Part shown: in pieces, positions 37,231-42,778 of the stretch
How the letters are laid out: each line of letters begins with the position of its first letter
How positions within the stretch are numbered: position 1 is the first letter of the stretch
Source of the DNA: Anaeramoeba ignava BMAN
Taxonomy: Eukaryota; Protista; Anaeramoebae
Direction: 5' to 3'
Assembly (NCBI GenBank): GCA_028826165.1
Contig: JAPDFW010000059.1
Location: 372,001 to 436,000, forward strand
DNA: 64,000 nt
The notes under the pieces: generated by a model
The model's input: the letters and a program-made list of their open reading frames with translations, nothing else
The model's database searches: none
Told to the model about the DNA's origin: nothing
Made by a program: the position numbers and the translations under genes

Positions 37231-40200
37231 TTATTTAAACTAGAAAAAATTAAACATAAATTAGTTAAGAAAAAATTAGTTTGAAAAAAATTATTTTAAC
37301 TTTAATTATTTACATGCTATTTATTAAATAATAATAATAATAAATATTTATTTGGATTTAATAAATATTTTTGGATTTAATAAATATTTTTGGATTTAAT
37401 TATTTACTTGCTATTTATTAAATAATAATAAATATTTTATTTAGATTTAATAAATATTTTTGAAATTTAATTATTTACTGGCTATTTATTAAATAATAAT
37501 AATAAATATTATTTGAATTTAATAAATATTTTGAAATTTAATTGTTTACTGGCTATTTATTAAATAATAATAAATAAATATTTTATTTGGATTTAATAAA
37601 TATTTTTGAGATTTAATTATTTACAAACTATTTATTAAATAATAATAATAAATATTTAATTTTATTTGGATTTAATAAATATTTTTAGATTTAATTATTT
37701 ACTCTCTATTTATTAAATAATAATAATAAATATTTATTATTTGAATTTAATAAATATTTTTAGATTTAATTATTTACATACTATTTATTAAATAATAATA
37801 ATAAATATTATTTAGATTTAATAAATATTTTTGAGATTTAATTATTTACATCCTATTTATTAAATAATAATAATAAAAATATTTATTTAGATTTAATAAA
37901 TATTTTTGGATTTAATTATTTACTGACTATTTATTAAATAATAATAATAATATTTATTTAATATTTATTGATTTGGATTTAATAAATATTTTTTGGATTT
38001 AATTATTTACATCCTATTTATTAAATAATAATAATAAATATTTATTTAGATTTAATAAATATTTTTGAGATTTAATTATTTATATTCTATTTATTAAATA
38101 ATAATAATAAATAAATATTTATTTAGATTTTTAATTATTTAATTATTTATTTATTAAATAATAATAAATATTTATTTAGATTTAATAAATATTTTTGAAA
38201 TTTAATTATTTACATCCTATTTATTAAATAATAATAATAAATATTTATTTGAATTTAATAAATATTTTTGAAATTTAATTATTTACTTCCTATTTAAAAA
38301 AATAATAAATAATTTATTTATTATTATTTAGATTTAATAAATATTTTTGAATTTAATTATTTACAAGCTATTTATTAAATAATAATAATAAATATTTATT
38401 TAGATTTAATAAATATTTTTGAATTTAATTATTTACAAGCTATTTATTAAAATAATAATAATAAATATTTATTTAGATTTAATAAATATTTTTGAGATTT
38501 AATTATTTACATCCTATTTATTAAATAATAATAATAAATATTTATTTAGATTTAATAAATATTTTTGAAATTTAATTATTTACTCTCTATTTATTAAATA
38601 AAATAATAATAAATATTTTATTATTTGAATTTAATAAATATTTTTGAAATTTAATTATTTACATTCTATTTATTAAATAATAATAAATAAATATTTATTA
38701 TTTGAATTTAATAAATATTTTTGAAATTTAATTATTTACATACTATTTATTAAATAATAATAATAATAAATATTTTATTATTTGAATTTAATAAATATTT
38801 TTGAAATTTAATTATTTACATTCTATTTATTAAATAATAATATTTATTTAATATTTATTATTTGGATTTAATAAATATTTTTGAATTTAATTATTTACTC
38901 TCTATTTATTAAATAATAATAATAATAATAATAATAATAATAATAATAATAATAATAATAATAATAATAATAATAATAATAATAATAATAATAATAATAA
39001 TAATAATAATAATAATAATAATAATAATAATAATAATAATAATAATAATAATAATAATAATAATAATAATAATAATAATAATAATAATAATAATAATAAT
39101 AATAATAATAATAATAATAATAATAATAATAATAATAATAATAATAATAATAATAATAATAATAATAATAATAATAATAATAATAATAATAATAATAATA
39201 ATAATAATAATAATAATAATAATAATAATAATAATAATAATAATAATAATAATAAATAATAATAATAATAATAATAATAATAATAATAATAATAATAATA
39301 ATAATAATAATAACAATAATAATAATAATAATAATAATAATAATAATAATAATAATAATAATAATAACAATAATAATAATAATAATAATAATAATAATAA
39401 TAATAATAATAATAATAATAATAATAATAATAATAATAATAATAATAATAATAATAATAATAATAATAATAATAATAATAATAATAATAATAATAATAAT
39501 AATAATAATAATAATAATAATAATAATAATAATAATAATAATAATAATAATAATAATAATAATAATAATAATAATAATAATAATAATAATAATAATAATA
39601 ATAATAATAATAATAATAATAATAATAATAATAATAATAATAATAATAATAATAATAATAATAATAATAATAATAATAATAATAATAATAATAATAATAA
39701 TAATAATAATAATAATAATAATAATAATAATAATAATAATAATAATAATAATAATAATAATAATAATAATAATAATAATAATAATAATAATAATAATAAT
39801 AATAATAATAATAATAATAATAAATAATAATAATAAATATTTAATAATAATAATAATAATAATAATAATAATAATAATAATAATAATAATAATAATAATA
39901 ATAAATAATATTATTTAATAATAAATATTTTTGATTTAATTATTTGCATTCTATTTATTAAATAATAATAATAAATATTTAATTTAATAATAAATATTTT
40001 TAATAATTAATATTCTATTTATTAAATAATAATAATAATAAATATTTATTATTTGAATTTAATAAATATTTTTAATTTAATTATTTATTTAATAAATAAT
40101 AATAATAATAAATATTTATTATTTGAATTTAATAAATATTTTTGAAATTTAATTATTTACTTGCTATTTATAAATAATAATAATAATAAATATAAATATT

Positions 40201-42778
40201 TATTTTAGATTTAATAAAATATTTTGAAATTTAATTTATTACATACTATTTATTTAATAATAATAAATATTTATTTAAATTTAATAAATATTTTTGAGAT
40301 TTAATTATTTACTTGCTATTTATTAAATAATAATAATAATAAATATTTATTATTTGAATTTAATAAATATTTTTGAAATTTAATTATTTACTCTCTATTT
40401 ATTAAATAATAATAATAATAAATATTTATTTGAATTTAATAAATATTTTTGAAATTTAATTATTTACATTCTATTTATTAAATAATAATAATAAATATTT
40501 ATTATTTGAATTTAATAAATATTTTTGAAATTTAATTATTTACTCTCTATTTATTAAATAATAATAATAAATATTTATTATTTAGATTTAATAAATATTT
40601 TTGAAATTCTGATTATTTAGCATTCTATTTATTAAATAATAATAATAATAAATATTTATTATTTGAATTTAATAAATATTTTTGGATTTAATTATTTACT
40701 CTCTATTTATTAAATAATAATAATAATAAATATTTATTTAGATTTAATAAATATTTTTGAAATTTAATTATTTACTGGCTATTTATTAAATAATAATAAT
40801 AAATATTTTATTTAAATTTAATAAATATTTTTGGATTTAATTATTTACATACTATTTATTAAATAATAATAATAAATATTAATATTTATTGTATTTAAAA
40901 AGAGAAAATTGAGAAAATGGAATATTTATTGTTTAACTCAAAAAGTAAGAAAAAAGAAAGAAAAAAAACTTACTTTCTATTTATTTCATGAATAATTTTG
41001 ATTTTAACATTTAGAATTGTTTATTTATTTTGGAAAATAATATTTACATACTATTTTTTTTTTGGATGAAATATTTTTAAATTCAAATTTTTTTAAATGA
41101 GTAAATGTAATAAAAAATAGTTACTTGCTATTTTTATTTGATAGAAAATATTTTTTTTTGAAAAATAAAACGAAATTATGTTAATTCAATAATTAAAAAA
41201 TTATTAAAAAAAATATTATTAAAAATTGTATTTTTGATTCATTTTGAATGAAAGATATAAAAATGGGAAATAAATTTACTTGAATTTCTTTTTCTAACTG
41301 TTGATTTTTATTGATTAATTCTTGATTTGTTTTGATTAAATTTTGTTTTTGATATTCAAATTGTTGTTTTTGATTTGCAAATTCTTGATTTTTTTTGATT
41401 AATTCTTGATTTGTTTTGATTAAATTTTGTTTTTGATATTCAAATTCTTGTTTTTGATATTCAAATTCTTGATTTTTTTTGATTAATTCTTGTTTTTGAT
41501 TTTCAAAATTGATTGATTTTTGATTAAATCTTGATTTTGATTTTCAAATTCTTTTTTTTCATTTTTTAAATCTTTTTGATTTTCAAAATCTTGATCTTTT
41601 TTGATTAATTCTTTTTTTTCATTTTTTAAATCTTTCTTTGTTTTGTTAATATTTTCAATCTATTATTGATTTTGAGAAGAAAAATTTTGTGTTTTGAATT
41701 AAATTTGAGAAAAGAAATAAGGAAAGAGATTAATTACATGATTATTGTATAATTGAACAACAATGTGAAAAGGGAAAAAAGAATATTTTTGAATAGCAAA
41801 CATTTGATAATCTGTAATTGGATGAAGAAATTGAACTTGTTGTAAGAATTGAAAAATTAGGTTATAAAATTCAATTTGTTGATGGTTTAAATCTATTTTT
41901 GGATGTTTTGAATCAGATTCTAAATCATTATATTTGAACCATTCGATAATTAAATCAGGGATTAAATGAAGTTTATTCACTTTTTTGTTTGAAAGAATCA
42001 TTTCAATGAAAGAAATAATTTCGTTTTGATTGAGATTTTGAATTTGATTTTTTTGGATCATTTTATCAATATTCTGAATTAAAAAATCTCCACAAGATTG
42101 AATAAGGAAATCTGATGAAATTCTTTTAGATTTAAAATAAAAATTAATTAAATTATGCTTAGTTAAAGATTCTTGAATTTCTTTTTGGATTCTAATCTGG
42201 AGTTTTGGTAACATTAGTTTATCAGCCAAATTGTAATATTGATCAAAAAATTGTTGGTTAATTTTAATCTCTCCGGTGTATAAAAAACGAATAACAGAAT
42301 CAACAATTTCAAATTCAAATTCAGGGAAATTAATTTCAGTGATAAATTTGGATCGAAATAATGAATGAAAAAATTGGCTTCTTGAACTTAAAACTAATTT
42401 ATGGCAACGAAATAATTTCAGATTTTTACCACAAATTATTGTAAAATCAGAAAGGGCTGCTTCATTTTCGAACATTTTTTTGAAATCGATTGAGCATTCT
42501 GAAACAAGCAAATCATCAAGTTGTTTCTTTGTTAATTGAAGTAAATTTTGTGTAAGTTGATTGTTATTGTTATTGTTATTGTTATTGTTATTGTTTTTCT
42601 CTTTGCTTTTGCTTTTGTTATTGCTTTTCTCTTTGCTTTTGCTTTTGTTATTGCTTTTGTTATTGTTATTGTTATTGTTTTTATCTTTGCTTTTGCTTTT
42701 GTTATTGCTTTTGTTATTGCTTTTGTTATTGCTTTTGTGTTTTTGTGTGTGTTTTTGTGTGTGTTTTTTAGATTGCAT
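37231..42778 (-). CDS. BTB/POZ(-BACK-like) protein with N/K/S-rich N-terminus, coiled-coil exon (41659-41280) and a C-terminal tail built from single-codon micro-exons; terminal exon 37239-37231
   Basis: BTB motifs 'LSDFTIIC..FRCHKLVLSSRSQFFHSLF', 'VIRFLYTGEI', 'LADKLML'. Intron 41660-41737 is phase 0. Exon 2 (one homopolymer indel near 41520) ends at CAA|GTAAAT (41279) with no stop. Then AG|NNN|GT exons and a final AG|TTT AAA TAA. Confidence 0.8.
37240..41279 (-). other. Array of ~70-nt phase-0 introns separating 3-nt micro-exons (32 canonical AG|NNN|GT, 4 imperfect, ~2 eroded units)
   Basis: Plus-strand unit ...TTAC-NNN-CTATTT... equals minus-strand ...AATAG|NNN|GTAA... NNN varies while the flanks are near-invariant. 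All NNN are sense codons on the minus strand. Confidence 0.82.
38912..39905. repeat. (AAT)n microsatellite, ~1 kb, interrupting the micro-exon array
   Basis: Near-pure AAT run; the same triplet forms a short tract inside every array intron. Confidence 0.95.

Follow-up and report, generated by a model that had tools for sequence, protein, structure and literature searches.

Single-codon exons as a candidate encoding of the C-terminal region of a BTB gene in Anaeramoeba ignava

How is the C-terminal tail of a protein encoded where the last long exon of its gene runs into a tandem repeat in which three nucleotides (nt) per unit vary? This question is raised by a BTB gene on the minus strand of a 64,000-nt stretch of the genome of the anaerobic amoeba Anaeramoeba ignava BMAN (GenBank assembly GCA_028826165.1, contig JAPDFW010000059.1, positions 372,001 to 436,000 of the forward strand), which is called the window throughout and supplies the coordinates given below. 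A sequence-only reading of the window had proposed that this tail is written as a run of at least 32 exons of one codon each. According to the patterns found in the array, in its paralogues, across the genome and in the DNA of other eukaryotes with identical layouts, single-codon exons are very probably a genuine feature at the level of the gene family. For the window gene itself the favoured reading, to which we assign a probability of about 0.48, is that it would specify a set of short, variable, low-complexity tails on an adaptor of the Cullin-3 type.

All 32 triplets listed in the sequence-only reading were recovered in place on the minus strand, each of them framed as TAG-NNN-GT, and two further units with the triplet AAT followed by GC (40624 and 39950) raise the total to about 34. 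Within the array region a count of the pattern AG-N(k)-GT gives 33 cases with k = 3 and not one with k = 2, 4, 5 or 6. None of the 32 triplets is a stop codon, every one ends in A or T, 15 begin with G or C, and the 12 distinct codons specify 12 different amino acids, all as had been claimed. In letter shuffles, third letters consisting exclusively of A and T arose with a probability of about 1e-4, and a stop-free series with a probability of 0.03 for the window array alone and of less than 5e-5 for three arrays pooled, a pooled value that is inflated because the units inside one array are not independent. The proposed phase-0 codon signature likewise held up: 11 of the 12 distinct codons are the preferred codon of their residue, with a probability of 0.001 for at least 11 matches to the most-used codon in the open reading frames (ORFs) of the window, and phase 0 fits codon usage best; a reading in phase 2 was discarded because of 7-9 stops per array. 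The spacers have a median length of 74 nt and resemble the normal short introns of A. ignava, for which a modal length of 76 nt and a very high A+T content have been published (PMC11550330). As predicted, the last intron (37240-37313) is followed by TTT AAA TAA. A known RNA family (no Rfam match) and a CRISPR array were dismissed as explanations, the latter because in the window array it is the spacers that repeat, with variation confined to the triplet between them.

A genome-wide scan of the kind that had been suggested showed 3-nt units to recur in the A. ignava genome. Paired TAG-N(k)-GTAA units spaced 45-75 nt apart number 575 for k = 3, compared with 8 for k = 4 and 5 for k = 6; TAA or TGA is absent from the first unit of all 575 pairs, and at most two stops occur at the second unit. 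Single TAG-N(k)-GTAA sites amount to 2746 for k = 3 and to 374 for k = 4, and the 28 k = 3 sites that contain TAA or TGA correspond to about the number expected from 374 background sites alone. Roughly 2,400 candidate 3-nt exons above background would thus be present in the genome, an estimate for which the 4-nt comparison is the only baseline. TTA is the commonest leucine codon in the window ORFs (0.40 versus 0.25 for CTT), and at the 3-nt sites it is found less often than CTT (37 versus 85). Since TTA joined to the G of a donor would create a rival TAG acceptor, this under-use would fit selection on splicing, sites within arrays not being independent of each other. Many A. ignava arrays have unrelated spacers, and the layout is therefore not a by-product of satellite repeats; the non-satellite arrays C2, C60, C61, C67, C73, C93, C104 and C128 are known from their match rows only. 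Match rows are also the source for arrays of another cloned intron at G000:C1:942330-942796 and 1057923-1073174, where triplets often end in G (ATG, TTG, GGG), which suggests that these exons are not in phase 0.

It is very unlikely that the window array is one long intron or a 3' satellite in which AG-NNN-GT provides stepping stones for recursive splicing, or is a repeat motif, the triplets never appearing in protein. The near-identity of the tandem repeat, the abundance of intronic satellites in this genome and the public gene models, which skip the units, would suit such an untranslated array, but the exact length of 3 nt, the avoidance of stops, the preferred codons in phase 0 and the arrays with unrelated spacers would be left unexplained. 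Recursive-splicing sites are, moreover, zero-length AG-GT junctions, and CRISPR-like and other repeats that match the same pattern have invariant triplets.

The gene that precedes the array encodes a BTB domain (PF00651, E 1.3e-18) and a BACK-like region with a value below the curated cut-off (PF07707, E 0.037); these were the sole matches in the Pfam search, in which no NACHT domain was detected. The closest proteins to the upstream ORF in a homologue search are BTB proteins of A. ignava, and binding to Cullin-3 is assumed here from family knowledge. The N-terminus is rich in Asn, Lys and Ser and has no hydrophobic stretch, as judged by inspection of the sequence. The features of the locus are, in order of transcription:

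41738..42778, minus strand: exon 1, 1041 nt, Asn/Lys-rich N-terminus, BTB and weak BACK; ends in phase 0 at the donor GTAATT
41660..41737, minus strand: intron 1, 78 nt, GT-AG
41280..41659, minus strand: exon 2, 380 nt, E/Q/K/N-rich repeats, coiled-coil-like; in the assembly its frame is broken by 1 nt between 41546 and 41485
40849..41279, minus strand: first four candidate single-codon exons (Q, Y, K, Y) with non-repetitive introns; orthologous units in three paralogues
40161..40848, minus strand: satellite block 1, nine cloned units of intron plus 3 nt (P R N R N R Q Y Q), of which the unit at 40624 has a GC donor
40622..40624, minus strand: AAT unit with GCT in place of GT; unspliced, the frame continues as N A K stop
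40012..40014, minus strand: AAT unit with an acceptor and no donor; the frame continues as N I N Y stop
39948..39950, minus strand: AAT unit with a GC donor
38902..39947, minus strand: expanded unit, internal ATT run grown to about 1 kb; spacer of 1046 nt
37314..38901, minus strand: satellite block 2, twenty cloned units of intron plus 3 nt, with a donor-less AAT unit at 38084-38086 and a collapsed junction at about 38148
37240..37313, minus strand: last intron, 74 nt; resembles the repeat unit at its 5' end and has a unique 3' part in common with the C57 and C87 arrays
37231..37239, minus strand: last coding exon, TTT AAA TAA (F K stop)
37090..37145, minus strand: conserved 3' element, an invariant alignment block common to the window, C57 and C87 array loci; probably a signal in the 3' untranslated region

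Exon 1 represents an intact frame of 347 codons. When this frame is carried into exon 2 it meets a TAA at 41485, and the frame that reaches the phase-0 donor of exon 2 is open only downstream of 41546. This break had been missed in the sequence-only reading, which took the upstream exon to arrive at a phase-0 donor without a stop. An indel error is a plausible cause of this frame break, the assembly having been built from Nanopore reads with base-level polishing (PMC11550330). Elsewhere in the window, kilobase A+T microsatellite tracts, which are typical of the genome, lie between or inside genes (4840-6670, 8794-9790, 11897-13319, 24021-24971 and 26192-27441), and two tandem multi-pass membrane genes, TauE/SafE-like by eye, occupy 43770-48288, each with an intron that consists of a short-period satellite.

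The paralogues provide a view of how such an array might have arisen. The BTB paralogue C57 is 81% identical and contains 36 intact units of the window repeat with a Lys/Asp-rich series, ending in a short last exon (E K N N Q K stop). The C87 locus (L024-L025, G000:C87:271200-278500) carries 72 units whose residues (I, F, L, A, G, E) make up a strongly hydrophobic series, and the units at its 3' end decay; the exon ahead of this array is N/Q/P-rich and has no clear start, and a TLDc gene is located upstream. In four subtelomeric BTB-ankyrin genes the place of the window array is taken by six 3-nt exons, set among introns that are not repetitive, and two further ones directly follow the ankyrin-like exon. 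This subtelomeric family is found at several contig ends (L027, L029, L031 and L032) and is apparently truncated past the first ankyrin-like exon; it also includes a candidate 9-nt exon (K K E) that is part of the public model P0005. The public ankyrin model P0157 lacks residues immediately behind the hairpin aspartate, a gap that coincides, suggestively at most, with the position of the 3-nt exons in the subtelomeric genes. An alignment of the first four junctions of the window gene and three paralogues showed that TAG and GTAA are invariant and always 3 nt apart, with differing triplets, and the three long arrays (window, C57 and C87) have a 3' region in common. Because these junctions and the 3' region are common across the paralogues, a few single-codon exons probably existed first and the amplification of one unit followed later.

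In the satellites, triplets differ by 0.55-0.63 per base and their flanks by 0.04-0.05, which is a ratio of about 13. Neutral tandem duplication cannot produce such a contrast, and hitch-hiking of triplets with unit lineages was rejected because flank variants and triplets are not linked. Either the introns are kept alike by short conversions while selection keeps the codons diverse, or codon changes are favoured. The insertion of introns into a pre-existing exon was rejected as well, since the synonymous variation of normal coding sequence is missing (in C87, for example, isoleucine is ATT in 17 of 17 cases and phenylalanine TTT in 15 of 15); this absence points to tandem amplification instead of insertion.

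On the favoured reading, the locus would be a BTB-BACK-coiled-coil gene of the Cullin-3-adaptor type whose C-terminal region is written as single-codon exons, in the place that ARM, ankyrin or TLDc binding domains occupy in its sister genes (the C-termini of sister genes of the BTB-BACK type contain ARM, ankyrin, TLDc or Ras domains). Each spacer of 70-80 nt would be an ordinary phase-0 spliceosomal intron recognised singly, and by virtue of this intron definition exons of 3 nt could be tolerated. The ancestor may have had four to six single-codon exons in unrelated introns, as the subtelomeric paralogues still do; one unit of intron and codon would then have been amplified in tandem, the introns being held near-identical and the codons diversifying from a small, array-specific pool. 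Variable tails are preferred to a fixed tail of 36 residues because units could be skipped without a frame shift and some donor-less junctions would end the frame, in the manner published for the nank genes of the truffle Tuber melanosporum as far as citing articles relate it. We infer from this layout that the triplets enter the mRNA and are variably skipped, and any role in binding is inferred in the same way.

Several results weigh against this reading. Two junctions (40014 and 38086) have TAG-AAT and no donor, both splice signals are gone at two others (about 40086 and about 38148), and a walk from each donor to the nearest acceptor ends after 6 micro-exons when GC donors are barred and after 13 when they are allowed. 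All four junctions with TAG and without GT (40624, 40014, 39950 and 38086) carry AAT, each with a different lesion; such lesions affect 4 of 7 AAT units and none of 29 others (Fisher P 0.0006, a pattern spotted after the fact). Because the walk ends at 6 or 13 micro-exons, a complete tail needs skipping or assembly errors. The single-codon exons of the sequence-only reading are well supported, and its uninterrupted run to the F K stop would hold only on that additional assumption. The non-independence of units mentioned above belongs here too, as does the reversed-pattern control of the single-site search, which was as high as the real count, elevated at 3 nt and 4 nt alike, inflated by satellites and uninformative. 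Finally, the choice of variable over fixed inclusion in Anaeramoeba is made by analogy. A constitutive series of single-codon exons that yields a fixed tail of about 34-36 residues ending in F K stop, with the frame break and the donor lesions being assembly errors or always skipped, is nevertheless rather unlikely. It would agree with all sequence statistics of the array and the genome, with the polished Nanopore assembly and with the short stop-containing exon in which both the window gene and C57 finish; the 2-nt units of the paralogues are all homopolymer-type losses (AA, CA, AT, TT), which is consistent with assembly error. The four different donor lesions, all on AAT units, however, look like real mutations, the nearest-acceptor walk stops at 40624 or 40014, and the tail peptide is not conserved between paralogues.

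The RNA comparison covered one run (X1), taken as contigs, and window positions 40860-42560, a segment outside the satellite and the ATT tract. One X1 contig is devoid of intron 1, and all 34 listed differences that were checked, together with the inserted letters, match the C57 paralogue. Since a contig without intron 1 carries the C57 differences, the run is RNA, the C57 paralogue is transcribed and introns of the intron 1 type are spliced. On the opposite side of the balance, no X1 contig crosses the donor at 41280 in this segment, and none is at least 99% identical to the window copy, although contig filters can hide records; the window copy may hence be silent. The 3-nt exons are missing from the NCBI models of the paralogues, but exons of this size could not have been placed by aligners of short reads. 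Homologue searches, a profile-free HMMER search and cluster look-ups returned no EukProt protein of A. ignava for the window gene or the array-bearing paralogues. It is unlikely, all the same, that the layout is real in the family while the window copy is a silent or decaying young pseudogene from which no tail is made. The frame break in exon 2, six damaged junctions along with the 1-kb ATT expansion, the missing own-copy contig and the decay of the C87 array at its 3' end would be expected of such a copy, but exon 1 retains its intact frame, 32 units are intact and free of stops, and the expressed C57 has breaks of the same kind, which points to assembly error.

The same layout was recognised in the DNA of other organisms. 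When metagenomes were scanned for the pattern, most matches were simple or CRISPR-like repeats in which the triplet does not vary, but about 20 contigs have variable triplets; these contigs were tentatively assigned to groups by their splice signals. Eleven fungus-like contigs with GTRAGT donors and often YTRAY branch points contain 186 units of 3 nt, as against at most 5 of any other length and none beyond background on the opposite strand, and stops are absent from these units (9.8 expected). One of the arrays follows a NACHT domain (L150:4917-6349) and another precedes a HET domain (L151:3974-4613). Arrays of 9-34 single-codon exons are present in the fungus-like contigs L150, L151, L054, L121, L067, L090, L120, L125 and L137. 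From such sequences, arrays of the Tuber type seem to be widely distributed among fungi of soil and roots. Eleven ciliate-like contigs with introns of 22-30 nt contain 184 units of 3 nt in addition to 6- and 9-nt units; their triplets include neither TAA nor TAG and five TGA, possibly owing to a variant code or to terminal units. B-box and RING domains occur among the neighbours of these arrays, and two contigs end in a CCCCAAT-type repeat, which we take to be the telomere of rumen ciliates. In one ciliate-like contig successive single-codon exons read C T K C G, and in another they read as a coiled-coil-like series more than 30 residues long. Long coding stretches of 3-nt exons were noted in L069 (JAEEGL011207684.1; more than 50 units in 3.9 kb), L058, L051, L097, L076, L140, L042, L055 and L107. 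Cloned introns with fast-varying triplets recur in L051 (ciliate-like) and L121 (fungus-like).

A wider interpretation, which we regard as doubtful, is that cassettes of a cloned intron and a codon form a recurrent, convergent diversification device of microbial eukaryotes, in which codons would vary at the DNA level an order of magnitude faster than their flanks and splicing would choose subsets of them to give a repertoire of recognition peptides. Such a device would span metamonad BTB, ankyrin and TLDc genes, fungal NACHT/HET genes and ciliate B-box/RING genes; in A. ignava, an amoeba that houses symbionts, it would act on ubiquitin-ligase adaptors. Provided that splicing does include the triplets, this species possesses thousands of the smallest frame-neutral exons, which public annotation has missed, and its spliceosome copes with dozens of them consecutively. 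A layout known from one truffle gene family would then have arisen in at least three distant lineages. Such genes would form a class that gene finders cannot see, and intron definition and the order of splicing could be studied in them in a simple way. The arrays would also raise the testable question of how the introns are held identical although the intervening codon varies.

Among the known systems, the window gene is like the BTB-BACK adaptors of Cullin-3 in its N-terminal BTB and BACK-like region and unlike them in having a micro-exon tail where the folded recognition domain would sit. Introners are families of introns that are almost identical to one another and that insert into existing coding sequence at scattered sites. 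The A. ignava introns likewise form near-identical families, but the copies are arranged head-to-tail, one per codon, and each residue has one codon, unlike in normal exons; insertion of the introner type was rejected in view of the tandem copies and the missing synonymous variation. The micro-exon genes (MEGs) of Schistosoma encode secreted proteins with a signal peptide and consist of 10-20 exons of mostly 15 bp (6-81) separated by introns of 0.1-5 kb (PMC10526429). They resemble the A. ignava arrays in that variable peptides of low complexity are assembled from a series of short exons, most of them frame-neutral, whereas the A. ignava exons are all 3 nt long, the introns measure about 74 nt and the BTB protein is of an intracellular type; these exon and intron lengths lie outside the MEG ranges, and membership was rejected. 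Isolated 3-nt micro-exons, as in animal neural genes and in Coprinopsis (27 such exons in 26 genes; PMC12230235), are spliced in vivo and missed by annotation. They stand singly between long exons, whereas the A. ignava candidates are many and occur in runs.

The closest likeness is to the NACHT-ankyrin (nank) genes of T. melanosporum, which, in the accounts of citing articles, contain tens or dozens of codon-sized, alternatively spliced mini-exons of 3 bp (Iotti et al. 2012, PMID 22289772, via PMC4986451, PMC9815663, PMC13449251 and PMC3689799). The sequence-only reading was therefore mistaken in treating dozens of successive single-codon exons as an undescribed arrangement. No description of such arrays in Anaeramoeba or ciliates was found in the literature searched, most subscription journals lying outside it, and a text search of the A. 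ignava genome paper and its supplements returned no mention of micro-exons (PMC11550330). As far as these accounts of Tuber go, both systems have tens of 3-nt exons per gene, with canonical splice sites in A. ignava (32 GT and 2 GC), in a C-terminal recognition region of an expanded gene family, and frame neutrality would allow skipping to vary the product. They differ in that the A. ignava host is a metamonad amoeba, the gene is of the BTB-BACK type without NACHT, and the array makes up the entire tail to the stop; its introns are cloned into a satellite, which may be a further difference. Alternative splicing has been reported for Tuber and is a prediction for A. ignava; the window gene is not a nank gene and may, by analogy, work like one. 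Judged by the same accounts, codon-sized exon arrays are known already from Tuber, and the finding is not categorically new. New are the BTB tail of a metamonad, the cloning of introns into a satellite while the triplets diverge, and the presence of this layout in fungal NACHT/HET and ciliate-like metagenome contigs.

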